NCBI RefSeq assembly: GCF_021869535.1
Contig: NW_026262672.1
Span: 3,906,001 to 3,970,000, forward strand
From: Mytilus californianus
Lineage: Eukaryota
Direction: 5' to 3'
Length of the DNA: 64,000 nt
Position numbers and translations under genes: made by a program. This document shows, in pieces, positions 8,785 to 62,009 of this stretch (within the stretch, counting starts at the first letter, position 1; the number at the start of each line of letters is the position of its first letter). The notes below the pieces were generated by a model. That model was not told where the DNA came from and did not search any database. It saw only the letters and a program-made list of their open reading frames with translations.

Positions 8785-9667
8785 TATAGGTTGCACTTTG
8801 TAAATACAGCTGTTTCTCTTACCACGCCTCTTTTGGGGAGATATATAATATTCATAGATAATTAATTTTGTTTTCATACTGGTTCCCAGATATGATCTCT
8901 ATGTTTCATCTCGTAGAGACAGAACTTGGGAATGTTACCAGTAAAGATGCATACGCATAGTGGTCAAATTGAAATCTGTAGAAAACCCAAAGTCAAGGTT
9001 GGGGTAGTACAGAATTTAAGTGAAAGTTTAAACTTAAAAGTTCGGGGCATATAAACATTGAAAATATGCCGCACAGTCCTATATTTTGACCTTTGAAAAA
9101 ATAGTAGTGCATATGAACTTTCCATTCTAGGATATAATTTTTTTTAAACTTCATAGTCCCCAAGGGTGACTGGGGAATAGAAGTATGGTCACCATTGGTC
9201 TTCCTCCGACCGGCAGTAAAACCCTTGCCAAAGTGGGGCGGCTGTGCGGGATGTACAAATTTGCAGCCACGTCCGGTCAGAATGGGGACGTTAAATCCGA
9301 TGCTTCGTGTTGAGAGAGTGCCATGCTCTTTGCACGTTGAGAACCCTTGCAACAACTCTTTGAGGGGTCCATAGGTGACCTGTTGCAAGGCTAAATTTCT
9401 GTCCCTATCCAATATACCCTCATTTCCCGTGGCAGTCTAAATTTCTCCGACCTTAATCCCGGACGCCTGTATTACAGAACCTACCTATTGTATTTATTGT
9501 TAATTTGTTCTCGTCCTTAATATGCATGAAATATTTGCCACTGGACGTTAAGCAACCAACAATCAATCAATCAATTAAACTTCATTGTAAAAGTGGCACA
9601 GTTTTAGCCGTAAAAGGAGTTCCTTTTAGAAATTGCATTGTCGATATTTACAGAAATGCAACCTATA
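8785..9667 (+). mobile_element. MITE family T copy 1, carrying SINE-A copy 2
   Basis: TIRs TATAGGTTGCACTTTGTAAA / TTTACAGAAATGCAACCTATA; internal sequence matches the reverse complement of 44636-45445. Confidence 0.85.
9158..9575 (+). mobile_element. SINE-A copy 2
   Basis: Full head to tail; 13-bp TSD TAAACTTCAT(A/T)GT at 9145-9157 and 9576-9588. Confidence 0.95.
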
Positions 9668-14900: not shown

Positions 14901-15531
14901 ATTACTTAAACCTCAAAGAAATCGTAACAGAATTTGGTCAGCCGTTTTTTTTGTAGCCATGTTTATACGTTGTGTGTTTGTTTATAAGCCTCATATATCA
15001 ATCATTAATTCTGCAAGAATTTAGTTTTTAAATTACTATTACAAGGTTTTTAAAAGGGTAAAGGTAAATGTTTAACGGAGACACAAGATTCCATTCAAAT
15101 TTCCTTCTTAAAAAGTTATAAAATTGAAAACTTTTGGTAGAAAGAAGACACATTTTTTTCTTTTTAATTTTTTATTTGCAGTTCTCAATGTTTTCTTTGA
15201 TGCTTGTACTCATAAATAAGAATGGTAACCATTTGATCATCATGTTGGAAATGTACACAACACCATATAGGGAAACACGACTACGCAGAGATATTAAGCA
15301 CTGGACAACAGATACAAAGTTTTTACAAAGACAAGCCGAAGCAAACATTTATTATACATATTTCTAAGAATAAATTTGGAGTAAAATTTGAAGAAAACAG
15401 GTTTCTTTGATCTTATTAAATGGTAATATGAAATATCTTATTAAATGGTTCTATGAAATATCATGAAAAAAATAAATCTGGAGTAAAATGTTGGTTTTGA
15501 TAAATATATAACCCAGTATAATAAATTACAG

Positions 15532-16095
15532 ATGTCAACGATTGAAACAAATAGTCACTGAAAAGGCAAACTTACAGCAACAACTTTTCAAACTAAAACA
15601 GCAATTGGCCGCAATTGAACAACAAGAACTAAAACCATCCAAACCAAGTCCCCACATTGAAATCGTTAAACCACTGGGGAAAACCATCTCATCCCCAAAG
15701 CCTGTGAACATGAATTCAAAGAAACCCCTGTTTTCAAATCCCCAAAAGCCATCCACCAGTGGGCTACAAAAAATAAAAATGCCATCCAATTATGAAGTTG
15801 CTCAGCCTGTCAAGCAGTCAGCATCAACATTAACAGATACCGACTCTGACATGGAGTTAGCGGAGTTGCTATTGGAGGAGCCTACAACATGTAGTAAAAA
15901 ACCAAGTACCTCCGAATCAGATGCTGAAATACCGCTACTGACTTAAGAACAAAAATTGAAATTGAAAAGAAAAATTGTAATCAACTCCTCGGACTCAGAA
16001 GATGGACAATTTACAAAAAAATCTAACTCAGAAAATGAAAAATCCAGGAAAAAAAGCTCACGTGTACAAAAAAAGAAAAAATGCTATGATATGTA
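15532..16095 (+). pseudogene. Exon-like frame: coiled coil plus Ser/Lys-rich tail, one stop
   Basis: TTACAG acceptor at 15531, then CQRLKQIVTEKANLQQQLFKLKQQLAAIEQQ...; same frame continues past a TAA at 15944-15946; product unknown. Confidence 0.35.
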
Positions 16096-17566
16096 AATAT
16101 TAAATAACTTTTATAGGTGATTTCAGCAATGAAAAATAATACAACGCTTCATTAACTAATATTTTACTTCAACCATAGTTAAGATACCAAACTAAAGACA
16201 AAAAAAAGTTGCTTTTTCATCCATGATAAATATTTGTTAAAGATATTTAAACATACCCTAATGAATTATTTCCCTTCGCAGGTAGGTTAAAGCTGTAGTA
16301 TGGTAATTAGTCAAATTTTGAGTAAAAAAAACGACGGAAATTGAATTTTGCATATTCTCCTCATGGATAGCAATGGAATGAAAAAATAAGAACAGTCTTG
16401 CGATACAGCATTGGAACTATAATTTGCGGCTGTACTTTTGCGTGTTTATCGCGTAACTATGGTAACGGGGCATATGCAAACACGTACTTTGAGCCCCCAT
16501 CTTAAACAGCCTGGCGCACCCCAAAGACCTACACGCAACTCATAAAATAAAGTTGTGTTTTGTTCATTAAAGTCTCATCTTTCATATGCTTGCTGTTTCT
16601 TCGTTTAAATTGAACAGGTTCGTTTATTATTTACAAAAACAAACTGAAGTTGTACCAAAAAAGCAGTAAACATTGAAGTCGTTGAATATTTGCAATGCTT
16701 ATCGCAAAGTTTTAAAATTAGAAACAGCAATATTGTTAATTATCATCATCATTAGAAGGGGTGTGCAAAGTTTCAAAGAGGTAATCGAACATTAATGGGA
16801 TGCGCCAATGCGTTTTTATACACGAATCACACAAAAATTCATATTTGTACACAAATAAAACATTCAGTTGATCAGGACTATTTGGATTATTTCCCCCGAT
16901 GAAGTAAATACGCCACGTTTTTCAAAACAACGATTTACTTTTTATAAATGCTGATTTGTTATTTATTTGCTTGCCGATTAATATTTATGACAAATGGAAT
17001 CGGGCATTCTTGACACCTTGCTTTCCTGCATCCATGAAGACTCAAAATATTGACATGTAAATCGGGTATCTTGATTTGAGAAAAAAAGGGGGGTTTATGT
17101 CTTTATAATTATTAAGAAAAACAGCATAAAAGTTCATGCACGAGGGTTCGATTCCCTCCCTAAGCTATATTAATGTTTTGATGTGCTGGTGCAAAGTTGG
17201 CAGATTGCTTAGTGGCCACACATGAACTTTTATGATGTAATATTTTTAAATTATTCAAACTTTTATGATATAATATAATTTAGACAGGTTTCTGATATTT
17301 ACAAGCTCTTTAGCTCAAAACATATTCAAATAAATCAATTGATTGATTGATTGTTGTTTGCTTTACGCCGCATTAGCACAGAAAGGCTATATCGCGGCGA
17401 GAGCTAATTCGAATATTATAACAATTTAAGGTATATTTTTAAAATCAGACAAAAGGTCTTTCAATAAACTAAAATTCTAGACTAAAGCAAATTGATTATT
17501 TACAAATAAAAATCAACACTAAGATAACGTGATAAAAATTAAAATCGTTTAAATATAACAACATTT

Positions 17567-20500
17567 TTATATTTTATAATATATTCCAATTTCTTTTAAG
17601 AATGAAACAATATTTGTAAATGGAATATTATTAAATAAATCATACATATTATTGACATTGAAATGCTTCTTCCGAATATCAGCAAAGTCAATACAATTGA
17701 TTAAAACATGTTTAATAGTATACTTGCAGTTACAAGGTATACATTGTGGTTGTACTTCATTTTTTAAAAGATATTCGTGTGTTATTCTAGTATGACCAAT
17801 ACGACATCTAGAAATAACACACTGATCTTTTCTGCACATAAAATTATTGAAAGGTTTACATAAATTAGGTTTAATTTCATGTAATTTATTACCATCTTTT
17901 TTACTCCATTCATTTTTCAATATATTAAAAACATATTCTCTAATATTAGATTTAAAATCGGTATATGGTATATCACAGTTAGATAAAGGGTCACCCAGGG
18001 CATTCTTTGCCTCAAGGTCTACAGCTGTGTTTCCAAGGATTCCAACATGACTCGGCACCCATAGAAATAATATTTCTTTAAGAAGAATTTTTAAATTCCT
18101 CATTACATATAAAATTTTGAGAATTGTTGGGTTTTTAATTTTAGTATTTTGTATAGCTTGTAAGCATGAAAGTGAATCAGAACATATAATAAATTTGGAT
18201 TTATCTGAAGAAGCAATAAATTTCAAAGCCAAAATTATTGCTTCTGCTTCAGCAGTAAAGATCGATGCATCAGATGGCAAACGGAGAGTTGCAGCTCTGT
18301 CCCTGAAGACAGCAGCAGATGCAACTCTGTCACCATCTTTTGATCCATCAGTATAGACAGTTGAAAAATCTGAATAATTGGCTTTGATTTCAGCATAGTG
18401 TTGCTGAATTAAAAGAGGATTTGTTTTATTTTTATTGTGTTCACGGAGATCAAATATCATTTTTGGTTTGGGAAGTTCCCATGGAGGACATTTGCAAGTT
18501 TCAACTTGAGCAACAGATTTTAAATCAAAAGAAGCTAAATGTGGTTTTAAACGTATACCTAATGGAGGAATTTTATTTTCATGTTTTGCAAAAATATCTT
18601 CATAAATTGGATTAAAAACACAGCTGTAGGCAGGATTATCTGAGTAGGCTTTTAGTTTGACAGCATATTGAAGTCCAAGCTTCAAACGTCTGTTAGAGAG
18701 TGAGTGCTCATCAGCCTCTACATACAGACTCTCAACTGGTGAGGTTTTAAATGCGCCAAGACAGAGACGCAAACCCTGATGATGCACAGCATCGAGAATC
18801 TGTATGTAGGACTTCCTTGCAGAGCCATACACTATAGAGCCATAATCTAGTTTAGATCTAACTAGAGATCTATATAAATTAAGTAAAATGTTGCGATCAG
18901 CACCCCAGTCGGTGCTGCCGACAACTTTTAAAATATCTAATGCTTTTAAACATTTCGATTTTAACATTTTGATATGGGGTAGAAAGGTTAACTTTTTATC
19001 GAAAATTAACCCAAGAAATTTGGTTTCATCAACCATTTTAATTGGGTTGCCGTACAAAGTGAGTTCTGGATCAAGATGCAATTTCCTTTTGTTACAAAAA
19101 TGCATCCCGACCGTTTTTGAAATGGAAAATTTAAACCCATTTTCCGAGGCCCATTTTTCAATTCTTCCAAGACATAACTGTAATTGTCTTTCTATGTTAT
19201 TCATATTTTTGCCTCTATAACATATTAAAAAGTCATCAACATACTATGAACCTTCAATATTACTTTTTAAAACTTCAACAAGGCTGTTGATTTTAAGACT
19301 AAATAATGTAACAGATAAAATACTGCCCTGAGGGACACCCATCTCTTGATCATACAGATCAGACATGGTTGAATTTACTCTAACATTAAATTGTCTGTTA
19401 GATAAAAAATTCGAAATAAAATTTGGCATATTGCCTTTCAACCCCATATCAAACAGATCTTTTAAAATACCATACTTCCATGTAGTATCATAGGCTTTTT
19501 CTAGATCGAAAAAGACCGACACTACATGTTCATTTTTCGCAAAACCATTACGGACAAATGATTCGAACCGAACAAGATGGTCAAGAGTACTGCGACCTTG
19601 GCGGAATCCACACTGGATATTGGCTAAAAGCCCATTGGATTCCAGGAACCAAACAAGGCGATCATTAACCATCCGTTCTAGTGTTTTACAGACACAACTG
19701 GTAAGAGCAATTGGCCGATAATTAATAGGATCCGTGTGATCTTTACTTGGTTTTGGAATAGGCACGACGGTTGCAAGCTTCCAGATTGATGGTAAATCAC
19801 CAGATTCCCAGATGTTATTCATAAGCTGCAAAAGAGCTTCCAGCGAGGAATCTGGCAAGTGTTTTAACAGTTGGTAGTGAATATTATCAGGCCCACAAGC
19901 TGTATCATGGGCTTTTGATAGAGATGTTTTAAGTTCTTCAAGAGAAAAGAGTTTATTATAATTTTCACCATTTTTTGATTTAAAGTTTAATTTAATTTTT
20001 TCTTTTTGTTTTTTAACTTTTTTAAAATCTTCCCTGTAGTTGTTAGAAGAAGAAGATTTCGCAAAAGTTTCACCAAGCTTGTTGGCAATATCCTTTTCAG
20101 ATGTTAATAAATCATTGCCATTTTTTAAATGTTTAACTGTGGCTTTAGAATTTTTACCTTTTATCTTTTGTATCATGTTCCATACTTTTGTCATCGGAGT
20201 GCGAGATGTTATCTCCGAGACAAATTTCTTCCAAGACGTTCGTCGTGCTTGCCTGCAAGTCCGCCGTGCCTTAGCGCGAAAAACACGGAAATTACTCAAG
20301 TTTTCTGTCGTTGGTTGTTGGTTGAACCGTCTTTCAGATTTTTTACGGTCACCTATTGCTTGATCACAAGCATCATCAAACCATGGTTTGCTGGGATGTT
20401 TCGGATTTGCCGAGGTCTTAGGAATAGTTCTGTCAGCAATTGACGTTAAAACTGTATTAAAAGTTAAAATTGGATCTTGTACAGTCTCAAACATCTTTGA

Positions 20501-21238
20501 CTGAAGTTCCGCTTGACAGAGATTCTCAAACAAGGACCAGTCCGCCTTGTCAAGTTTCCAACGTGGTACTCTCTGTTGGGCAGAAGTAAAAAGATGTTCA
20601 AGTACTATTGGAAAGTGATCACTTCCACATAGATCATCATGAACACGCCATGAATAATCCAGAAGAAGAGAGGGATCGCAAATAGTGATATCAATAGCAG
20701 AATAAGACCCGTTTCCAGGATGAAGATAAGTATTAGATCCATCATTAAAAATGCATAATCCTTCTTGAGAGACAAAGTCCTCAATGATCTTACCTTTGAT
20801 ATTATGAGACTTGCTTCCCCACAAGGGGTTGTGTGCATTGAAGTCGCCCATAAGTATAAATGGTGAGGGTAATTGATCAGTGAGGTTTTTGAGTTTAGCT
20901 TTATCGATAATTGAATTGGGTGGAATATATATAGAACATACTGTAATTGTTTTATCTAATGATAAACGAATTGCAACTGCCTGCAGATCCGTGGTGAGTT
21001 GGACTGTGCTATGAATGACGTTGTCCTTCACAAAAATGGATGATCCGCCTGCAGCACGTTCATCTACCTTAGAAAATGTGCTATACATGTTGTATCCTTT
21101 TAAAGATACATTGTCACTTTCTTTTAAATGAGTTTCTTGAAGACAAAATGCAGTAGGTAAAAAAGACTGAACTAGAAGCGTTAACTCGAGAAGATTTATT
21201 TTAAGACCTCGGCAATTCCATTGGATGATATTAGTCAT
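17567..21238 (-). pseudogene. LINE ORF2 (AP endonuclease, reverse transcriptase, RNase H), one in-frame stop
   Basis: IIQWNCRGL, LQETHL, GDFNAH, SDHFP (APE); YRPIALTS, FFDLEKAYD, GVPQGSILS, then S*YVDDF (RT); YTDGSK, TAEAEAI, CSDSLS, WVPSHVGILGN (RNase H); CIPC..TIKHVLINC. The two tracked ORFs are in frame, separated only by TAG at 19246-19244 and 13 codons. Confidence 0.95.
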
Positions 21239-22764
21239 GTTTTGTTAATAGACGGGCGAATGCTATCGAGTTTGCCAGCATTCTTATTTCGCTCACCCTG
21301 AGATTGTAATCTTTCGGGTGGCGGAACACTTTCGATTTCCATTTCTGATTCGTCGTTAAGTGTTGAAAATTTGTTGTGTGAGGAGAGTCGTCGATCTCCA
21401 GGACCATGCGCAGCTGGTTTTACTCCGCCTCCACCCCTACCCCGCGACCTCGAATCAGAAGACTTCTGAGAGGATGTATTTGCTGGCTTCTTTGGGACAT
21501 CCTTCTGTTCTGGAGAACGAAGAGGAGACGGGGCTTTAGAAGACTTTGTACTAGATGCAGAAGATAAACTAGTTTTATTAAATGCAGATGAAGGAGGACT
21601 ATTGGAGATGGAAGAATCATCAATGTCACTGGGAAGATCCCAGATAGATTCACCGCCCCAACTGTCTGATTTAACTGTATCTTTTTTATTTGATTTCTTT
21701 TTTTCATTTTTTTTAGATGATGACATTGAGCTCTGTAAGGAAGATTGAGTTGACTGAGTACTGGTTTTAGAAGGTGTTGGTTTTCTTGGAATTAATATTT
21801 TATCGTTAGGTTCTGTTTCAACAGGCAGCATTGTAAATGTCTCAGCATCAATTGGCCAGGTCATGCGAGTTTGTGTATGCTCGTGACTGAATGAGCGGAC
21901 AACTTTGCTGGCGTACGATGGTCTGTTCGAAACAAGGAGATCATTCGAAACAGAAGCTATCTGTTTAGCTTCTGGGTAACTGATGTTTCTTTCTGTTTTA
22001 ATTTTGATAATATTTTTTTCTTTAAGGTAAACAGGGCAGTCCCTAGATGATGAAAAATGGGATTCACCACAGTTTACGCATTTAGAAGATTCAGAGCTAC
22101 AGGTTGTTCCCTCGTGTCCTTCGTCAGAACACTTGAAGCATCTCTGCGTACCACGACATTGTTTGCTTCCATGACCAAACTTTTGACAAGTGAAGCATCG
22201 AATTGGGTTGGGGATAAACCTGTCAACTCTGATTCCGAAGCAACCTAAAGTAATAGATGGAGGAGGAGTTGGAGTTCTAAATGTCAAAAGATATGTATTT
22301 AATTTGATTATATTTCCATTCTTTTTTATTTGAAATCTAACAACATCAGTTACACCTTGGCTTAAAAGTTCCTCACAGATTTCTTCCACGGTAAGGTCAC
22401 CAAGGTATTGACTTCTGTCTCGAATGATCCCCTTACAGCTGTTCAAACTGTTGTGAGGAGAGGCAGAAACAGGAAAGTTTGTAATTGTTGTCAGTGTAAG
22501 CAAATTTGTTGATTGACTTTTGTTGGAACATTCAACCAACAAATTGCCTGATCTCATTTTTGAAACTTTTTTTACAGTACCAGCAACGCTTTGAATTTGT
22601 TTGTGAATCACAAAGGGAGATATTTTGGAAATTGGTTTTTCATCTGTTCCTTTTATTACAATAAATCTGGGCCAACTGTCATCTTCCTGACAGGGCACTG
22701 AATCATCACATTTTCTTTTTTTATGTATTAAAGCTGATTTAGAGGGTTGGTTTTGTTGTGCCAT
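21235..22764 (-). CDS. LINE ORF1 Gag-like nucleic-acid-binding protein, 509 aa
   Basis: Likely ATG at 22764 (MAQQNQPSK); three knuckles CFTCQKFGHGSKQC, CFKCSDEGHEGTTC, CVNCGESHFSSSRDC; Ser/Lys-rich tail; TGA stop overlaps the ORF2 ATG. Confidence 0.9.
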   Translation of the reverse strand: MAQQNQPSKSALIHKKRKCDDSVPCQEDDSWPRFIVIKGTDEKPISKISPFVIHKQIQSVAGTVKKVSKMRSGNLLVECSNKSQSTNLLTLTTITNFPVSASPHNSLNSCKGIIRDRSQYLGDLTVEEICEELLSQGVTDVVRFQIKKNGNIIKLNTYLLTFRTPTPPPSITLGCFGIRVDRFIPNPIRCFTCQKFGHGSKQCRGTQRCFKCSDEGHEGTTCSSESSKCVNCGESHFSSSRDCPVYLKEKNIIKIKTERNISYPEAKQIASVSNDLLVSNRPSYASKVVRSFSHEHTQTRMTWPIDAETFTMLPVETEPNDKILIPRKPTPSKTSTQSTQSSLQSSMSSSKKNEKKKSNKKDTVKSDSWGGESIWDLPSDIDDSSISNSPPSSAFNKTSLSSASSTKSSKAPSPLRSPEQKDVPKKPANTSSQKSSDSRSRGRGGGGVKPAAHGPGDRRLSSHNKFSTLNDESEMEIESVPPPERLQSQGERNKNAGKLDSIRPSINKT

Positions 22765-23377
22765 AGGAAATGAGAAAGATTCACCATTCTTGTCATCCAC
22801 CCACCTCGGAGTGCCTACAAGGGCGATGCTGTGTTTCCGTGGCGAGCCGGGGTCAAGTGCTAATGCTGAAAACGAGCTCCAAGTATAACATGTATAACGT
22901 AGCTGGTCCCCAAAATTAGCACCCAAGATCCACTGCGGAAAGCACCAGATGTTCCAAGAATGGTATACTCAAGCAGAGCGTATCCATCAAGCGAAATAGA
23001 AAGCGTACCACTTGATTGACCCATGAGCCATCGCCTTCTTCAGTTGTCCGAAATATAAATAGCTTTATTTAAAACACATGTGTATATCATGAAAATTGTT
23101 ACAAGAAAGCTTATTGTTGAGGATTAACTGAAGGGCTCGACATGACCAGCCGATTGATCGAACCGGGTCCATCCGACCTCCCGTTTAGATGATATTGGAG
23201 CCAAAGCAGCTTATTGAACTATAGTCTTGTCCGTCCGGGTATTTTCTGACCGTAAGGAGTCTGGCTACAGCCCTCATCCGCAAGGATCTCGTCAACCACC
23301 GACACGGGTAGCAACCCACGGCCAACGGGTTGGAGAGCCTATTTTATTCAAAACATCGGGCAACTCGTACGATGTTC

Positions 23378-23524
23378 GGATCACTTTAGTCTGGTCTCTA
23401 CCCTTCGACCTGTCCGGCATGGGTAACCCTACCAGGAGACGAAGCTCCAACTGGCATAGCTCTTGGGGTCACTGAGACACGCAAGCCCCCCGACCACGGC
23501 AAGGATAGCGATCCACCGGGGGGT
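23378..23524 (-). ncRNA. Candidate HDV-like self-cleaving ribozyme at the LINE 5' end
   Basis: P1 CCCCCCG/CGGGGGG, P2 GGAUCGCU/AGUGAUCC, P3 (A)UCC/GGU, L3 UUGCCGU, long branched P4, J4/2 ACUAA with putative catalytic C at 23389. Confidence 0.6.
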
Positions 23525-23554
23525 GTAGCTTTTGATGATCTAAACTATTTGCTT

Positions 23555-23975
23555 CCCCAAGGGTGACTGGGGAATAGAAGTATGGTCACCATTGGTCTTC
23601 CTCCGACCGGCAGTAAAACCCGTGCTAAAGTGGGGTGTCCGTTTGGCTGTGCGGGATGTACAAATTTGCAGCCACGGCCGGTCAGAATGGGGACGTTAAA
23701 TCCGATGCCTCGTGTAAAGAGAGTGCCACGCTCTTTGCACGTTAAGAACCCTTGCAACAACTCTTTGAGGGGTCCGTAGGTGACCTGTTGCAAGGCTAAA
23801 TTTCTGTCCCTATCCAATATACCCTCATTTCCCGTGGCAGTCTAAATTTCTCGGACCTTAATCCAGGAAGCCCCTATTACGGAACCTACCTATTGTATTT
23901 ATTTTTAACTTCTTCTCGTCCTGAATATGCATGAAATATTTGCCACTGGTTGTAAGCAACCAACAATCAATCAAT
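23555..23975 (+). mobile_element. SINE-A copy 4
   Basis: 15-bp TSD ATCTAAACTATTTGC at 23538-23552 and 23974-23988. Confidence 0.95.
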
Positions 23976-24955
23976 CTAAACTATTTGCAATTAAAATTAA
24001 GGCTCTAGCTCTTACGATTTTTAAGATAATAAAAAAATAAGGAAATTTTTGAAAAAAATGTAAATTAAGGGCCATAACTCCTAAACCGGTTTTCCGATTG
24101 ACTTCAAATTTTTAGAATAAGTAAATCTTTACGTGCTGATCAATTTAAACCAGAATTTTGATATTTGGAACTGTTTTTGAGTTATTTGCCAAATAAAAAG
24201 GTGTTAAGTCTATTTTTAGCCATGGCGGCCATGTTTTCGACGAATCAAAATGATTGACACACTTTTTAAAGTAGATACTCTAATTAACATCGGGGTCAAG
24301 TTTGGTAAAAATCCCGTCAGTGCCTTCGAGGAGAAGATTTTTAAGGGAAAAGTTAACGGACATACGACGGACGCAATGTGATGGCTAAAGCTCATCCTGA
24401 CTCTTAGTCAGGTGAACTAAAAACCTTAACCGGACCATGGTCAACATATAGTTGGTAATATATACATATAAAAAATGTAAATAACTAAAGATACTTATTC
24501 ACAGTTTTGTTATCACCTTTTCAAAGTAATTTTGGTAATTTTCACATGTATGTTCATGTATTGTCATACAGCAAATAAAAATATTAAACTTTAATTATAA
24601 TATAAGTGTTGTACATCTAATGTACCGGTTCATGCTTTTCTGTCAAACACATATTTATTCTAGTCATCCTTTTTTAATTTTGTATGAACATAAGATATCT
24701 TATTACTTAAATATTATTATGATCATGGTTGAATAAAGCATCAGACCTGAGGTGTTACTGTATGTTGGTGACATTATTTCATGTATAAAAAAGTAATGGA
24801 TCTGACAGTTAATGTACACTTGTATATCTTTGTTTTTATATAAATATGAATATGGGAAAGGCGCCAAATAGATAGCAGGGATTATAAAAGTACTACCTAA
24901 CAATGCAAAGGTAAAATTAATTCTGCTCAGACAAAAATTACAGACCTACTCCCCT

Positions 24956-25235
24956 CACATTAAGATAAATTCAGTCTATTGATACACAGTAATAAACAGA
25001 ACTTGGATTTATTTATTGTGTGTTAAGCTTTTCCTATTGTTTACCTAATACACAATGATCAGAAAATCTCTGATAATTATACTGAAGAGAGGCCTCACTT
25101 TTGTTGTTCAGTATTATCATCTGAGGTTTTGATCATTGTGTATTAGGTAAACAATAGGAAAAGCTTAACACAGAATAAATAAATCCAAGTTCTGTTTATC
25201 AATGAGTATCAATTGACTGAATTTATCTTAATGTG
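24956..25235. repeat. Long near-perfect inverted repeat (foldback), ~125-bp arms
   Basis: CACATTAAGATAAATTCAGTC...TGAA | ~20-nt loop | TTCA...GACTGAATTTATCTTAATGTG; arms pair almost throughout. Confidence 0.92.
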
Positions 25236-25329
25236 AACACATTAAATTTTAATTTGACACTTCACTTGAACGCATTATGACCTATCGTATTTGGACTGAA
25301 TGCAATATAAGACCTTCCTTTAATCTGCA

Positions 25330-25800
25330 TCAAGAAAAGTTTATCAACAATACATTCTACTGGAATCACATGTGTTTCTGGATCGATAGCTTCAATGACT
25401 CTAACGATGTGTTTTGCAATGGTGTCACAAAGAAAACTTTGCTCATGAATTTCGAGTTTTTGAGTGTACGCAAAAACTCTTTGAGCGATAGTATCAACAA
25501 CAAAATAAAGTAACTTCCTGATTTCTCCATTTTCATTACGGATTTCATGACAAATGCGTTTTTTTTTTCCATTCTATTGTATTCTTGAGAGTAAAATTTC
25601 TCTTCCTTAGATTTAATTCGCAGTCCAATTTTGACATTTTCCATTGATTGAGCATCAGTGATTTCAAGAAATAATTCCTTAGCACCTTCTGGAAGATCTG
25701 AGGATGATGTTAAACGACCTGCTACATAAACATTCCCAAAAGATTTACCACATGACCACAATTTAGCTTGCGTTTTTGATTTGCCAAGATGTTCCCAAAA
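25330..25800 (-). pseudogene. Possible CACTA/EnSpm-type transposase C-terminal fragment
   Basis: GLRIKSKEEKFYSQEYNRMEKKNAFVM...GSYFIL resembles the YHS-Y-R-KRN---V motif of animal CACTA-like transposases; inference. Confidence 0.4.
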
Positions 25801-25904
25801 TTATGATTTCTGAATACAATTAAGATCTATCTTAACTTCAGTTCAATCTCCCCTAGACGTAAACACTGTTTGGTTACATCACCTGTGCCGTGCAATTTCT
25901 CACT

Positions 25905-26510
25905 AATTATGAGTAATAGGATAACTATATTTGGTATTTGGGTTCCTTGCAACTTTTACATGTCCGTCAGACAGGGTTCACCTGACCTCATTTCATGGAT
26001 CTGTGATCAAGGTTAAAGTTACGTGTTTATGTCAGTTTCTCAGATACTGTAAGCAGTAGGTCAACTATATGTGGTGTATGGAATGGTTGTAAGAGGTACA
26101 TGTCAGTCTGGCAGGTTTCATCTGACCTTGAACTCATTTTCACGGTTCATTGGCCAATGCTAAGTTCTTGTGTTCTGGTCTGTTTTTCTAATACTATAAG
26201 CAATAGGTCAACTATATTTGATGCATGGATTGATTCTAAGGTGTACATGTCTATCTGTCAGGTGTTATTTGTCCTTGACCTCATTTTCATGGTTCATTGG
26301 TCAATGTTAAGTTTTTGTTTGTTGGTCTGTTTTTCTAATACTATAAGCAATAGGTCAACTATATTTGGCGTATGGAATGATTATAAGTTGTACATGTCTG
26401 TCTGGCTGTGTCGTTTTTCCTTGACCTCAATTCATTGTTCATTGGTGAATGTTAAGTTTTCATGGTTTAATCTGTTTCTTGTATACTATAAGCAATAGCT
26501 CAACTATGAA
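25905..26510. repeat. Tandem array of ~147-bp units (about 4 copies)
   Basis: Anchor AGGTCAACTATAT and variants at ~25919, 26059, 26206, 26353, 26498. Confidence 0.9.
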
Positions 26511-42041: not shown

Positions 42042-42588
42042 CTACTGCCTCTGTTTCACCATGTTACTGAAAATTCTGTTTGAAGATAATATCTGGTTCG
42101 GTTTGGACGGCCTGATCCCCTGCTTCGTTTGCTCAGTGCTATCTTTGGTTTTCTGATGTAATATCACTTGGTCATCCTTGTCTTGCTTCTTGTGTTCTTC
42201 TGTTGCTTGTCTTTTGTTAACCATTTCTTTAGCTTTGGTTTCCTGATGTAATATCAATAGGTCATCCTTGTCTTGCTTCTTGTGTTCTTCAGTTGCTTGT
42301 CTTTTGTTTACCATTTCTATAGCTTTGGTTTCCTGATGTAATATCATTTGGTCATCCTTGTCTTGCTTCTTGTGTTCTATTGCTTGTCTTTTGTTAACCA
42401 TTTCTTTAGCTTTGGTTTCCTGATGTAATATCATTTGGTCATCCTTGTCTTGCTTCTTGTGTTCTTCTATTGCTTGTCTTTTGTTAACCATTTCTTTAGC
42501 TTTGGTTTCCTGTTTTAATATCATTTGGTCATCCTGGTGTTGTCTCGAGTGGATAAATATCGTATCACACTTGATGCAGTGGTAGAAT
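42042..42588 (-). other. Exon-like frame with 4.3 tandem 90/87-bp (30/29-aa) charged repeats
   Basis: AG acceptor at ~42589, FYHCIKCDTIFIHSRQH then (MILHQETKAKEMVNKRQAIEEHKKQDKDDQ)n with no stop through the array (42143-42536). Confidence 0.55.
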
Positions 42589-43764
42589 CTATATATACAT
42601 GTATATGTACTAATTAAATTTTACAAGTTATTTTATATACCCCACAAAAAAAAATCCCTTTCTCTGAAGAAATACATGCATGTAGAAGGTTATACTCTAA
42701 CCAATTCAAACAGAAATAAAATCTGAATGTGTTTATTTTTTTTCAGAAAGAAATTATTTCTTTTCTTTTATAATTAAATAACCTGTATAACAGAATAATT
42801 TACAGATTTGATAGTAAACTGTTAACAATGTTTACTACATGTATATGTATCAGAATAATTGATCCTTTGCATTGTTTATATGTTTTTCTACTTTTACACA
42901 ATATGTTTTTCTACTTTTACAGGGTAACATCAACTCCAAAACCAGACTACAGACAAAAAAAATGAGTTGCACAACTATGCAAGCAGCACTTCAAAGAAAA
43001 CCAACTGTAAGAAAACTTGCACCAGAAAAGAAATTAATGCCTTACACACAAAACTATTTGAACAATCAGAAATCTGTTACATTTTGTCATCAGAGGAATT
43101 AAGAACCATTATTTCAGTATTGCTAACTAGATCACGAAATAGTTTAGTTAACTGCATACTACAATTCCCTGAAATTAAAACCCTTGTGAAAGAAGAGATA
43201 GGGGCTGAGACCTATTGCTATCAGTCTTGAACCGAACGGTGGTCCGGATTAGTTATAGTGTCCTCACTGGAAGCAGAAGAGCAGGTAGGTCAGGAAGTTC
43301 CTCTGACCGACAAACATGGTATATCAGAAGTACATCTAGAAGCCAAGCTGGCAGGAGAACAATTGACAGAACAGAAAGCTGAAGGCTTGAAGTCTCTCCC
43401 CAAGCTGAGGAGTCAGTAAAGACCGAACCAAATTAGTACATGTGTCAAAGGAGCCGTACTCCCGAACGACCTGGCTGACAAGTCAATGAGACTAGCAATG
43501 TACCGCGAGGGGTGCTCAGTGCCTCGTTTGATATATGCCCTCCTCTCATAATATGGTTTCAGCTTTTATGTTTTCCTCTAAGTCCAAGTTGGTACCCTCT
43601 TACAAATAATGGGTTTCTAACCAGATTAAAACAGTTTTTAAAATCTCTTCGATATGACATTTCTACATGTAAGTACTCGAGTCAGAATGTTGCGTCTCTT
43701 CAGAAATGATTCAGACACAGGGGGATTGGAATATGATGCATACAAAAGTTATTGTAGACCCCAT

Positions 43765-48376: not shown

Positions 48377-50225
48377 TTAAATTTCAGCAAATTCATCAGG
48401 TTCTCTTATTAAGTCTGTTCTTAAGTTCACAAGGGCTGAACATAAAAGAAGAATGTCATCAAAGTTTATCAATGAGGACACTGGAACAGTACTGCTTAGA
48501 ATTTTGAAAACTTTAAGTCTACGAATCGCACGCTCCACATGAATTCTTACTCTTGCTATACGCCTGGTTGTTGTTAAATCCTCATTACTAAGTTGTGGTT
48601 TGCATTTTGTAAAGGCTGGAATATTTGGTTTGACTCTCAGTGGTAAAAATAAATCATCAATTGTGAAACCCCTATCTGCCATCACCTCGTCTCCAATGCC
48701 AACAAGATATTTTGCAGTGTTATGCTTGTAGTTACTATATGTCTCTGACCTACTCTTCAGATTCGTTGGTCTCTGTATAAATGTCTCAGCACAATCAATT
48801 ATCACAGTTGTACGAGGATATATTTCCCGAAAAGATTCGGGAATACCAGCTCGAATTGTCTCTCATGGAAGCCAAACAACCAAGCCTTTAAGTTTTTCAG
48901 CAAGAACTGGCATCCAAGAATTACATAATTTACATGCCAAACTTTTTGAAATACCAAAGCGACGTCCTAAATCATCAAGTATCAAATAAAGTTTTAACCT
49001 CATCAGTACAAGCAACAGCTGATCTGCAATATCCAGTTGAAAATTGAATTGATTGTCTACACGAACTAATTCCACTTAAGTAAAAAAAAAAACTTCCTTG
49101 GTTACACCAGTATATAATAAAGCGTCACAATGTTCGTATTTGCTGACATGGTCCCCCCTTCTATTTTACTCTGAACACTTTTCTCCTCTGTCAATAAAAG
49201 TTTTGTCTGAGTTGATGTTGTCTGCATGTCTGACCATTTTTCAGCATAGGGGTGGCCGTCATAAATAAGAAAGTCCGTCTTATCATACTGGGTAGATTCG
49301 GTAACAGTTTCAGGATAAGCTACATTAAAACTACATGTAGCCTCGGGATACGTTTCATTGTCATTATTTACAAAAATGTCTAGAGCTTCAAAAACCAGTA
49401 GAGTCAGATACATTATCGTCATCAGAATCATTCTCACAATTTAATTTCAGCTTTTTCACAGCCGCCCCCAAGGGTGACTGGGGAATAGAAGTATGGTCAC
49501 CATTGGTCTTCCTCTGACCGGCAGTAAAACCCTTGCTAAAGTGGGGCGTCCGTTTGGCTGTGCGGGATGTACAACTTTGCAGCCACGTCCGGTCAGAATG
49601 GGGACGTTAAATCCGATGCCTCGTGTAAAGAGAGTGCCACGCTCTTTGCACGTTAAGAACCCTTGCAACAACTCTTTGAGGGGTCCGAAGGTGACCTGTT
49701 GCAAGGCTAAATTTCTGTCCCTATCCAATATACCCTCATTTCCCGTGGCAGTCTAAATTTCTCCGACCTTAATCCCGGACGCCTCTATTACAGAACCTAC
49801 TTTTGTATTTATTGTTAATTTGTTCTCGTCCTGAATATGCATGAACCATTTGCCACTGGACGTTAAGCAACCAACAATCAATCAATCAATTTTCACAGCC
49901 CTTTCACGACGTTCCAACTTGCGTCTGCCGGGTGTAACTTTACTGTCATAATCAAGTTTTAATTTGGGAAACGGATTTCTTTTTGTCGATGCACCATCAA
50001 GAAAATGTTCGGAACATACATAAACATGTTTTGGTAAAGTTTTTCTGTTAATAACTTTGATCAACTCGAGTTTTGTTAATTCGTTAGAAGGCATCAAATG
50101 AAACTTGTATGGGATTAAACAAGGACAGTCATTGTGCAACTCGTTGTGTAATTCACACATTGATTTTTCCACATCTGAAGTTTTCTACGATTATTTGTAC
50201 TATTAACTGCACAAGAATTGCTCCA
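48377..50225 (-). pseudogene. ISL2EU/Harbinger-like transposase (THAP, HTH, DDE), internal deletion and SINE insertion
   Basis: SCAVN...YVCSEHFLDG (THAP); DQLLLVLMRLKL..DLGRRFGISKS (HTH); IIDCAETFIQRP, YSNYKHNTAKYLVGI|GDEVMADRGF, RIARVRIHVERAIRRLKVFKIL (DDE). Convergent with the YqaJ gene, as known for ISL2EU. Confidence 0.88.
49464..49889 (+). mobile_element. SINE-A copy 12, inside the ISL2EU transposase
   Basis: TSD TTTTCACAGCC at 49453-49463 and 49890-49900. Confidence 0.95.
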
Positions 50226-56406: not shown

Positions 56407-57076
56407 AACATCCAGCGGCAAATTAATTAAGATATGAGATGGAGAGGCATGTTAAGATCTTTGTAAAAGACCTGTTTGGGAAAGAAAACTTACCAAAGTC
56501 AACTAGCAGGCATTTTAAGCCAAGTCGACAAGATTTAAGAAAGATCTCATTGTTATAGATATTTGTCAAAAACGTCATCACAGAAATGTTGCCGTTTCCT
56601 GCCTTAACGCATCACTTTAACAGTAGGTAAATAAACAATTACTTTGGACAGAGAATTTTTTGAAAAAAAAGAACATCCAGCGTCAAATTAATTAAGATAT
56701 GAGATGGAGAGGCATGTTAAGATCTTTGTAAAAGACCTGTTTGGGAAAGAAAACTTACCAAAGTCAACTAGCAGGCATTTTAACCCAAGTCGACAACATT
56801 TAAGAAAGATCTCATTGTTATAGATATTTGTCAAAAACGTCATCACAGAAATATTGCCGTTTCCTGCCTTAACGCATCACTTTAACAGTAGGTAAATAAA
56901 CAATTACTTTGGACAGAGAATCATTTGAAAAAAAGAACATCCAGCGTCAAATTAATTAAGATATGAGATGGAGAGGCATGTTAAGATCTTTGTAAAAGAC
57001 CTGTTTGGGAAAGACAACTTAAGAAAGTCAACTAGCAGGCATTTTAACCCAAGTCGACAAGATTTAAGAAAGATCT
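56407..57076 (+). repeat. Tandem array, ~2.5 x 265 bp
   Basis: AACATCCAGCG(G/T)CAAATTAATTAAG at 56407, 56672, 56936. Confidence 0.95.
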
Positions 57077-57490
57077 ACAGGGAGCGTGAACGACTGGTGA
57101 ATTGTCTTCTTAACTAAGAGAGATTGCAAACTTGGTCAAAGGGCAAAGTGTTTTTCTATGTTAAGTGCCAACAGTTAAAAAACTTGTGGTAGAATATGAG
57201 ACTAAATATTCTGAAATCATTATCACTGCAGGACAGCAATCTTTCCTCTTTGTTTATCAGACAGATTGGCAACAACACTTTCTTCAGGAATATGGCAATA
57301 TCAATATGGTGTTCTTGGGATGCAACATACAAAACAACAAAATATGCTTTGCCCCTTTTCTTTCTGTATGTTTTAACCAAACCTGGATATGCATTTATAT
57401 GAACCATGATCATGGAATCAGAAGACTCTTGTCTCGTGTTCAAAGCACTCAGTAAACTTTCAGAGATGAATCCAGGATTCGAGATGAATG
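56936..57490 (+). pseudogene. MULE transposase fragment (pre-core and core)
   Basis: EMERHVKIFVKDLFGK..LPKSTSRHFNPSRQDLRKI then FLFVYQTDWQQHFLQEYGN..DATYKTTKYALPLFFLYV; homologous to 35740-36085. Confidence 0.75.
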
Positions 57491-59590: not shown

Positions 59591-62009
59591 TCAGAATTTT
59601 AATAAACATTGTTTCAAGGCTATCTACGACAGTGCAGTTCTTGCAACAAAATGTGACATTAACTGGCAAAGTCAATACTTTCTCAGAGGACAGTAGTAGC
59701 TTGTGAAGAAACAACGACCACCATCGCAAACATGTGGATTCCAAATGTGAATTGTGACTTTTTGTCCTGTGACTTTCTGTGCTATATTCACTACTAGGCA
59801 GGAAACGTCGAAATTTTACTTGGAGTACTAACGACGACAAAATAATTTACTGGAGTACCAACAACGACAAAATAATTTCTATTTACCTGTGTGGCATTGC
59901 ATACCACAAAAACAAAGGAAGAATTGATCTACGCACCTTTATATATGCAGCTCTCTCATCTTATCATATACAGTGCTAGCTTCATATAACGTTGAAGATA
60001 ACGAACTGTTGAAACCTTGCTATTATACGCTTAGTAAATCAGGAAAATACAAATTATTCAAGTTAAATATCGACGGTTGCTGTCTAGTAGTGATGAGTGT
60101 TTGAAAGACGGGCATTGGCTAGAAACTTGAGCGATTTATAAATAAAACATTTCACTTCCACTGCATTACTTCCATGTAAGTCGCATGTTGTTATTCTATC
60201 TGCGCTGACATCAACAAATGAATAAATTAAGTCAATCAGAACTGCTTTCAGTACACAAAATTTCTGATAGTCAGTACGCATAACCTGTTAAAATTCTTTG
60301 AGGTCACTCTCCTGATGTTCACGTCCCCAAATAACTGCTGATACATGCTAAAGTTTTGATGATGGGTCACAAATTTTCTTCAACCGCGATTTTGAATGGT
60401 TTCTAAGTGGTGTGTAGTGCACTGTGCCCTCTTGATGAAGTTATACGACAGACAAGTTGGCGATACCAAGTCGTAGAGCTGCTCCGGGTTATGCAGTCAT
60501 AAATAAACCTCGACACTTCTTGTGATAATTAGCAATACCATTGCATTTAATATATAATTCATATAATGTACGATTAGTATTATTAGGATGATACAAATTA
60601 TTGAGTGTTGCTGGAATTTTTGGGATATTAGCTGTTGGTGTTGTCCAATGAAAGTCAGCACTTATGAACCTTGTAATTTGTTTGAAGGAGGATTTATATG
60701 TAAAGATTAAAGAGGGTCAGTTTCTATTTTTACGTCGTTGTACGACTGGGAAAAATCTTCCTCCGGCTCCGTTACGACATGCTTGGTCATAGTGTTTGGC
60801 GATCCCGAAATCTCATACAACTTATGACCACATTTTTGTAACATTGAATAATGTAATGCCTAGCAAAATTTGCGTTAGGCTTTTCATGGTTAATAAGTTT
60901 TGATTTTTCTCCGCACTGTTCTTCAGCTCTGCCAATCTGCAATGGTACGGCCATGTTTTTTGCTTTCAAGTGCATCAGACGATTTGTACATGCATACCAA
61001 AAATAACAAAATAAGAATTAAGTCTCCGTCAATTTCTTATTTCAACAATATTTTTACAAATTAATTTCATTTTTTTTGTTATCAAATAGAAACTAGGTCG
61101 TATATAGATGGGTGGAACAATTAATTTGGTGTATTAATGCGTTTGCGTTAAAGGTAGATATACTGTGATTTAACTGGGTGACGATAATAGGTCGTCATTT
61201 TAGAAGAAGTAATTTATTATCTTTCAGGATGATTGACATAATTCACTTTAATCGTACTTTCGTGTTAATTTGAGCTGTTGATACAATTTGTATTGCATTT
61301 TTGTTAATTACTGTTTACTTATTTACATATCTTGTGTCACCATTTCCTACATTGTCCACTTTTGATAACTGTTTGGTATGACGATAAATTTCCACTTCCG
61401 TTATCGTACTATGAACAACAAAATTATTCCTCCACAGAGTCCAGTTTATTGTATTCATTATTGTATTGTAAGAATCTGATGAATTGCGAAATACCCTTAT
61501 TAAAAACCTGTCATAGTTGAACTCCGGGCAATTGCATCATTTAACTGTGACAAAAAAAAACTCTATTGATACCGAATAAATAAATCGGTCCACTTATACT
61601 ACTGAAAAATAAACGGTTGACCTCGCACTTTCTCATACAAAAAGGCTTTATTTTTTGTCTTTCATTGACCTGATATTGGATATAGTTTCTTCTAATGATT
61701 TTTTTGTTATTGATTTTATTGAGTTTCGACTTGAAAAAATATAGTCCACAGTAGTTCGATGTACCGTGGGATTGAAACATACCAAACGGAGACATGTGGG
61801 CTTTTATTTCCATCTGTTTTGATTATTTGCCTATCGATAAAGACTAGAATTTGCATAACGAAGGTTATACTAGTACTAAAAAGCATCAAATTCCTCGGAT
61901 GACATGGAGGACTCAGAAGAGATGATTGCGGATGCAAGATCATATATGAGTTTCATTTGCGGAATTTCTATCCGAACGTCTTCTTGCAGTGTCATCAGAT
62001 CCTGTAAGT

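Follow-up and report, generated by a model that had tools for sequence, protein, structure and literature searches.

A putative HDV-like ribozyme module at the first bases of a mussel LINE, and a compact canonical one in related abalone LINEs

The first 146 nt of a LINE in a 64,000-nt stretch of Mytilus californianus DNA (the window, meaning the whole stretch analysed) probably form a genuine HDV-type module, as judged by sequence comparison. Observed are the fold itself, its start at the first base of the LINE, the canonical ribozymes of related elements and the covariation of helices P1 and P2; catalysis and a role in vivo are inferred, and the probability that the common sequence of the Mytilus LINE family cleaves itself is put at about 0.5. 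What is new in this analysis is a predicted canonical HDV-like ribozyme at the 5' end of LINE relatives in abalone (Haliotis). The features of the window on which the argument depends are the following, where nt k of the LINE RNA corresponds to window position 23524-k on the minus strand.

17338-23523, minus strand: the LINE, one element with a 759-nt 5' UTR
17338..17566, minus strand: 3' UTR, with a (CAAT)n tail at its end
17567..21238, minus strand: ORF2, with endonuclease (APE), reverse transcriptase and RNase H; overlaps ORF1
21235..22764, minus strand: ORF1, a CCHC-type protein of 509 aa from the first ATG (22764)
22765..23377, minus strand: 5' UTR beyond the fold, holding the block GGGUUGC..GUGUCGGUGGAGGA at ~23317-23292
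23378..23385, minus strand: P2 3' strand, AGUGAUCC, nt 139-146
23386..23390, minus strand: J4/2, A-C-U-A-A (A134-A138), directly abutting P2'; candidate catalytic C is C135 (23389)
23391..23484, minus strand: P4 domain, branched, 94 nt, with closing helix UUG[CGU]GUCUC/GAGACCAG
23486..23492, minus strand: P1 3' strand, CGGGGGG, nt 32-38, followed by a C at 23485 (C39)
23493..23505, minus strand: P3/L3 hairpin UCC-UUGCCGU-GGU, P3 being nt 19-21 with 29-31 and L3 nt 22-28
23507..23514, minus strand: P2 5' strand, GGAUCGCU, nt 10-17
23516-23515, minus strand: J1/2, GU, the same GU as in the abalone ribozymes
23517..23523, minus strand: P1 5' strand, CCCCCCG, nt 1-7; 7 bp, fully paired with CGGGGGG
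23555..23980, plus strand: a SINE-A copy, head-to-head with the LINE and 30 bp from it, whose head is a P1/P2-type pseudoknot without P3/L3

The set of APE, reverse transcriptase and RNase H domains, together with a CCHC-type ORF1, is compatible with the I/Nimb group. The LINE had been called full-length in a first-pass annotation; the whole element is indeed spanned, but the reading frame of ORF2 is broken at codon 665 (19246-19244) by one stop, such that the copy is not intact and is defective in ORF2 irrespective of the state of the ribozyme. Of the ORF1 relatives for which a source is named, those at 74-96% identity all belong to Mytilus, and abalone and spiders follow at lower identity. 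The family has thousands of young copies in the mussel genome, as estimated from depth in a DNA run. Elsewhere in the window, a long near-perfect hairpin at 25008-25183 matched, on either strand, several microRNA precursor families of plants and insects with scores under the gathering threshold (73 bits vs 230), and looks like a MITE-type inverted repeat. Tandem arrays occupy 42099-42632, 25991-26507 and 56407-57198, with periods of about 90, 147 and 264 nt, respectively.

On the minus strand, 23523-23378 (146 nt) can be laid out in the nested HDV order P1-P2-P3-L3-P3'-P1'-P4-J4/2-P2', and the drawing given in the first-pass annotation, with a P1 of 7 bp and a P2 of 8 bp, proved right in every element, its listed weak points included. 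The first pair of P1, at the predicted cleavage site, is C1-G38 and not a G.U wobble. P2 (GGAUCGCU/AGUGAUCC) has 8 bp including one G.U, with a ninth pair, U.G, possible, and A18 sits between P2 and P3. The P3 pairing UCC/GGU consists of two G-C pairs and a U.U mismatch, while the other register, AUC/GGU, opens an 8-nt loop. L3 has U, C and G where the canonical UCCUCGU loop has them, the letters being as first described, P3' and P1' abut with zero gap, and in P1.1 only G24-C39 can form, giving one pair of reversed polarity. The closing helix of P4 begins one base past P1', right after C39, and leaves a single base between its end and C135. Constrained to contain this helix, the 96-nt domain adopts a three-way junction of -25.0 kcal/mol, vs -27.3 kcal/mol when unconstrained. 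The C-U-A-A strand claimed for J4/2 is present at 23389-23386, where it abuts P2', and the two oddities pointed out at that time, the C-G pair at +1 and the P3 mismatch, are both in the sequence.

Among genomic copies, the common variants inside the fold lie only in P4 (23450 and 23462), and P3 and P1.1 are invariant. Other, commoner copies of the Mytilus family read CCCUCCG in P1, a C-G/U.G change that leaves a wobble with the same partner, and copy L003 has AGUGACUC in place of the P2 3' strand, giving one mismatch. Across the UTR the variable sites, taken from variant frequencies over thousands of genomic copies, are too few to detect selection on the core.

The boundary of the element was fixed independently of the fold. 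The UTR with its flank was compared by BLAST with copies fetched via the ORF1 relatives, and homology begins at 23524/23523 (query position 97/98). Unrelated flanks precede CCCYCCGG in the aligned copies, three of these flanks being independent (L001 and L005 share one); one further copy, L004, is truncated inside the fold, 5' truncation being frequent among LINE copies. In the DNA run the summed contig depth was approximately 33,000-94,000 over the fold, against 36 for the 22 nt past 23527, a fall of about 1000-fold, and the reads and contigs of other copies end at 23523/23524. The first base of P1 (23523) is the first base of the LINE, and the predicted cleavage falls between 23524 and 23523. 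That the fold lies exactly at the 5' end of the LINE, as had been proposed, is borne out by the three independent flanks and by the depth cliff at 23524. At L001:1-78 and L005:10700-10778, both copies of the Mytilus family immediately follow the (TCAA)n tail of a different retroposon, with an identical 12-nt spacer; either a single locus was sampled two times, or the tail-to-head layout is recurrent and would give co-transcripts.

LINE relatives in Haliotis, with an ORF1 39-48% identical to that of the mussel LINE (48% for H. cracherodii, L030), carry a compact HDV-like fold of 58 nt at the exact nt 1 of the element, after unrelated flanks.

L030:2317-2374, H. cracherodii: compact HDV-like ribozyme at the LINE 5' end, 58 nt
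L016:1920-1977, H. asinina: the same, first copy
L016:8549-8606, H. asinina: the same, second copy

The abalone fold reads GGCACYC-GU-P2(7)-A/C-ACC-UCCUCGU-GGU-GRGUGCU-GGGUAACG-C-UAA-NN-P2', and has a G1.U37 wobble, a full P3, a canonical P1.1 of two pairs (CC with GG) and almost no P4. Its catalytic strand is CUAA in two of the three copies and CCAA in the third. In the alignment of the three copies 98% of the cells are paired, and three changes are compensatory. When searched with Rfam, the abalone stretches matched HDV families only, with 29, 25 and 15 bits for L030 and 19 bits for L016 (best E = 7e-4), all scores being below the gathering thresholds. We take these stretches as a real family of HDV-like ribozymes in LINEs related to the mussel LINE.

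The layout P1(7)-GU-P2(7 or 8)-A-P3(3)-L3(7)-P3'(3)-P1'(7)...CUAA-P2' is common to mussel and abalone. Outside P1 and P2, 12 of the 16 core bases, junction bases included, are identical, whereas the pairs of P1 and P2 all differ in sequence and keep their complementarity. The two folds occur in related elements, at the same nt-1 position, and share segment lengths, junction bases, CUAA and a block in the 5' UTR, but the mussel fold differs by its large branched P4, the mismatch in P3, at most one reversed P1.1 pair and C1-G38. The core ACC-UCCUCGU-GGU that the first-pass annotation had quoted for R2 ribozymes is identical to the abalone core, and the mussel loop keeps its U, C, G and U. In abalone the ribozyme is followed by a separate P1/P2-like pseudoknot, and it is this downstream pseudoknot, not the abalone ribozyme's own helices, that the mussel P1 and P2 resemble in sequence. 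The mussel module may therefore be the counterpart either of the compact abalone ribozyme or of the pseudoknot behind it.

The shared block, GGGUUGC-N5/6-GUGUCGGUGGAGGA, is near-invariant between Mytilus and Haliotis despite the ORF1 identity of 39-48%; it was located at ~23317-23292 (minus strand) in the window and at L016:2040-2070, L030:2455-2485 and L020:~165-195. A diverged form of the block, AGUUGC..GUGACGGUGGAGGA, is present in another LINE family, P0036. A metagenome scan with the conserved block as pattern returned two bacterial chance matches and one truncated element, and no new 5' ends.

By sequence, P1 and P2 of the mussel LINE (CCCCCCG..GUGGAUC..CGGGGGG) are a pseudoknot that recurs in other elements, in which a C run pairs with a G run and GUGGAY in the loop pairs with RUCCAC a few bases downstream. 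This pseudoknot was found at the very 5' end of the P0036 LINE family, of the L006 family and of SINE-A, an element of ~430 nt, as well as directly behind the ribozyme in abalone. The 5' end of P0036 is given by four contigs with flank or extra bases ahead of the head, two of these flanks being long and clearly different, and that of the L006 family by eight copies with independent flanks. Examples of the pseudoknot are the SINE-A heads at 49464-49560 (plus strand), 31024-30930 (minus strand) and 23555-23650 (plus strand) in the window, L020:82-130 and L006:3262-3315; its linker is UAGAAUAG-like. Depending on the family, the first helix has G-C, U-A or A-U as its innermost pair, and the second helix changes as GUGGAC/GUCCAC, GGGGAC/GUCCC, GUGGAA/UUCCAC and GGUGAC/GUCACC. 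P1 and P2, for which covariation had been proposed as a check, indeed covary across families, while within the Mytilus family the variation amounts to C-G/U.G in P1 and one break of P2 (L003). This covariation indicates that P1 and P2 are real, selected helices. In the SINE-A copy of the 13581 region (minus strand), GAUGAC/GUCAUC replaces GGUGAC/GUCACC, a double transition that keeps the pairing; the second helix is broken in the SINE-A copies 41495 and 45386.

SINE-A is linked to the LINE at the other end too. The last ~30 nt of the LINE (17338-17368, minus strand) recur at the 3' ends of 13 SINE-A copies at 90-96% identity, for example at 9546-9576 and 49861-49891, and the shared 3' end fits a partner pair of LINE and SINE-A.

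What the mussel LINE adds to the pseudoknot is the P3/L3 hairpin, the P4 domain and CUAA, and these additions convert it to an HDV fold. SINE-A, the P0036 family and the downstream pseudoknot of abalone lack P3/L3, and their linker holds no catalytic C; HDV-like solutions sought in the heads of SINE-A, the P0036 family, abalone and L006 gave none that was convincing. The L006 head fits the HDV fold only when 8 nt are allowed between P2 and P3, although this family has the canonical L3 loop UCCUCGAU in the homologous hairpin. In two copies of the L006 family, L007:3264-3300 and L015:3262-3300, UCCUCAAU stands for UCCUCGAU, a CpG transition by which the G is lost from the L3-like loop; this G is essential in HDV ribozymes. 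The ORFs of L007 are still intact. A ribozyme is not the sole route to a precise 5' end, because the coreless heads of SINE-A and P0036 have ends as sharp as that of the mussel LINE.

If the module is active, a copy would be transcribed from outside, from a host gene or an upstream element, and P1 (nt 1-7 with 32-38) and P2 (nt 10-17 with 139-146) would close into a double pseudoknot of the nested kind. The active site would be formed by the P3/L3 hairpin together with the A-C-U-A-A strand, with C135 (window 23389) as the general acid, and cleavage would fall immediately 5' of nt 1, at the 23524/23523 junction. The LINE RNA would then begin at its own first base, and the next copy would inherit the module.

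RNA reads at the boundary were taken from one stranded run, as raw reads from ~6% of the run. About eight reads cover the last 20 nt of the fold, from both strands, and eight RNA reads at 23523/23524 continue into the flanks of other copies. No pile of read starts was seen at the LINE 5' boundary at this depth of ~8 in that run, and the SINE-A boundary, with ~100 reads, gave the same picture of run-on reads and no start pile. The RNA seen is mostly read-through or intronic transcript of many copies, possibly with some DNA. Because coverage is tiny and comes from both strands, the reads neither refute nor support cleavage as such; they do not support efficient cleavage in the sampled tissue, and cannot separate active from decayed copies. 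A read start at nt 1 would fit cleavage and transcription initiation alike. The earlier interpretation stands in its structural reading, which has gained comparative support from the abalone ribozymes, the common layout and the covariation of P1 and P2. The release of the LINE from read-through transcripts by self-cleavage stays putative: the boundary reads run on, no covariance model fits the fold and the coreless sisters are equally sharp-ended.

It is possible, if on balance doubtful, that the module is a relic scaffold, namely a descendant or look-alike of an HDV ribozyme that cleaves no longer or too slowly, with the P1/P2 pseudoknot kept for another job and the 5' end set by transcription initiation. 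That job could be, for example, to act as DNA in part of an internal promoter, or as a 5' structure recognised in translation or integration. The 77-nt segment of L1Tc, which is both promoter and ribozyme, gives this explanation a precedent (PMC3383444). The coreless P1/P2-type pseudoknot at the exact 5' end of P0036 LINEs and of SINE-A, and behind the abalone ribozyme, also speaks for it, as do the RNA reads that cross the boundary with no discrete ends seen. The same is true of the mussel core, which is degraded relative to the canon: P3 is mismatched at U.U, P1.1 has one reversed pair at most, and C-G replaces the G.U wobble at the cleavage site. On the other hand, the U, C and G of L3, the CUAA that abuts P2' and the zero gap between P3' and P1' would be unexpected without a catalytic constraint, given the thousands of young copies. 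Internal promoters of the I and jockey elements have an initiator-like CA(G/T)T; the mussel LINE starts with a C run and, to our knowledge, has no such initiator-like sequence at +1, which is counted for the ribozyme.

The pseudoknot itself can be read in two ways, either as an old ribozyme whose core was lost in some lineages or as a structure with another function in which the HDV likeness of the mussel is secondary. A bolder and rather unlikely reading takes the pseudoknot for a scaffold of the HDV ribozyme whose catalytic loop came and went repeatedly in LINEs of molluscs and other invertebrates and in SINE-A. It would then be complete in Mytilus and perhaps in L006, stripped in SINE-A and P0036, and, in abalone, stripped with a canonical ribozyme in tandem upstream. 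If this were true, the scaffold would have a second function at the 5' end, independent of cleavage, and ribozyme modules would have been exchanged or duplicated between LINE lineages.

The frequency of the motif by chance was estimated with a descriptor (P1 of at least 7 bp, P2 of at least 8 bp, L3 with U...CG, and CNAA adjoining P2') fitted to the candidate post hoc. It matches once in the window, at the candidate, and 0.035 times per dinucleotide shuffle (7/200), figures which flatter the candidate because the descriptor was written after the candidate had been seen. With P2 relaxed to at least 6 bp the matches rise to 0.4 per shuffled window, and with P1 of at least 6 bp and P2 of at least 5 bp to ~3; the other relaxed matches in the window are AT-rich noise. 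The motif by itself is moderately rare, and it is the placement at the element's first nucleotide, one of 128,000 positions, that makes it non-random.

The covariance search for HDV ribozymes asked for in the first-pass annotation was run, and no Rfam HDV family matched at E<=10. In detail, the Rfam scans of 15000-26000 and of 23340-23560 (221 nt, E<=10) gave no ribozyme match, the HDV models, including RF00094, RF02682 and RF01787, left the mussel fold unmatched, and the scan of the L006 head likewise gave no ribozyme match. A covariance model, R1, was built from the three near-identical abalone ribozymes and is accordingly narrow. Run against the window, both under default filtering and unfiltered, and against 10 loci, it recovered only its own training sequences and missed the mussel fold; being built from three near-identical sequences, it is too narrow to test homology. 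Its matches in the window at 61153, 12722 and 2202 were chance-like on inspection. No excess of stability over shuffled sequences was seen for the 161-nt region (z = +0.9) or the P4 domain (z = +0.6), plain-folding z-scores being uninformative here because pseudoknots are outside the folding model. The G run of P1' also has competing pairing partners. A chance resemblance, in which the complementary runs of a GC-rich 5' UTR can be arranged as an HDV drawing, would accord with the matches of the looser descriptors in shuffles (0.4 and ~3 per window), the want of support from covariance models and the unremarkable folding energies, but it is improbable given that the motif begins at nt 1 of the element, that P1 and P2 covary in diverged families and that canonical HDV-like ribozymes of matching spacing and junction bases are present in related elements.

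Both R2 and L1Tc/ingi elements are known to carry HDV-like ribozymes at their 5' ends (PMC3774820, PMC3185411, PMC4035085), and many other non-LTR elements are cited in these papers as having them. Each oddity of the mussel fold is, by analogy, precedented in active ribozymes. A C at +1 and a P1.1 of one pair occur in active ribozymes of the L1Tc clade (PMC4035085, PMC3185411), and the active R2 ribozyme of the jewel wasp (Nasonia) has a mismatch in P3 and a P1 of 4 bp (PMC3774820). Active R2 ribozymes also tolerate a missing or a large P4, the silkmoth ribozyme being without P4 and inserts of hundreds of bases being accepted (PMC3774820), and large peripheral domains can accelerate the reaction (PMC4908430). 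Conversely, some trypanosomatid folds that are adequate on paper are inactive (PMC4035085).

The closest analogue to the pair of LINE and SINE-A would be L1Tc and its non-autonomous partner NARTc, which have in common the first 77 nt of L1Tc (Pr77/L1TcRz), a promoter and a ribozyme at once (PMC3383444). As proposed for the mussel module, L1TcRz is an HDV-like fold at the first bases of a dispersed LINE with APE, reverse transcriptase and RNase H, cut 5' of +1; it likewise has C at +1, and its P1.1 consists of one pair, the most that can form in the mussel. The 5' module of L1Tc is shared, in some form, with NARTc and SIDER, whose mussel counterpart, SINE-A, has a head without the catalytic loop. 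L1TcRz is 77 nt long with a short P4 and is proven active as ribozyme and promoter, whereas the mussel module is predicted from its sequence and has 146 nt with a 94-nt branched P4. The polarity of P1.1 is reversed and P3 mismatched in the mussel relative to L1TcRz, and the likeness is one of fold and position. R2 ribozymes have the same architecture as proposed here and serve to cut the element RNA from a co-transcript. R2 is site-specific in 28S rDNA, with a single ORF, a restriction-like endonuclease and an rRNA promoter, whereas the mussel LINE has thousands of dispersed copies, two ORFs and an APE endonuclease. In a full-text literature search no paper was found to connect HDV-like ribozymes to LINEs of molluscs, the main surveys lying outside its scope.

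For most dispersed LINE families, the way in which an RNA is made to begin precisely at the element's first base is unsolved; in R2, RTE and L1Tc, HDV-like ribozymes are the known solution. A ribozyme in the mussel LINE, or its canonical abalone version, would extend this mechanism to lophotrochozoan LINEs with two ORFs and APE, reverse transcriptase and RNase H. The variants form a series from the canonical ribozyme, through a ribozyme with a large P4 and a bare pseudoknot, to a SINE with a bare pseudoknot, and this series lets one ask what in the HDV fold is required for cutting, and to what other uses a 5'-terminal pseudoknot may be put in a retrotransposon.
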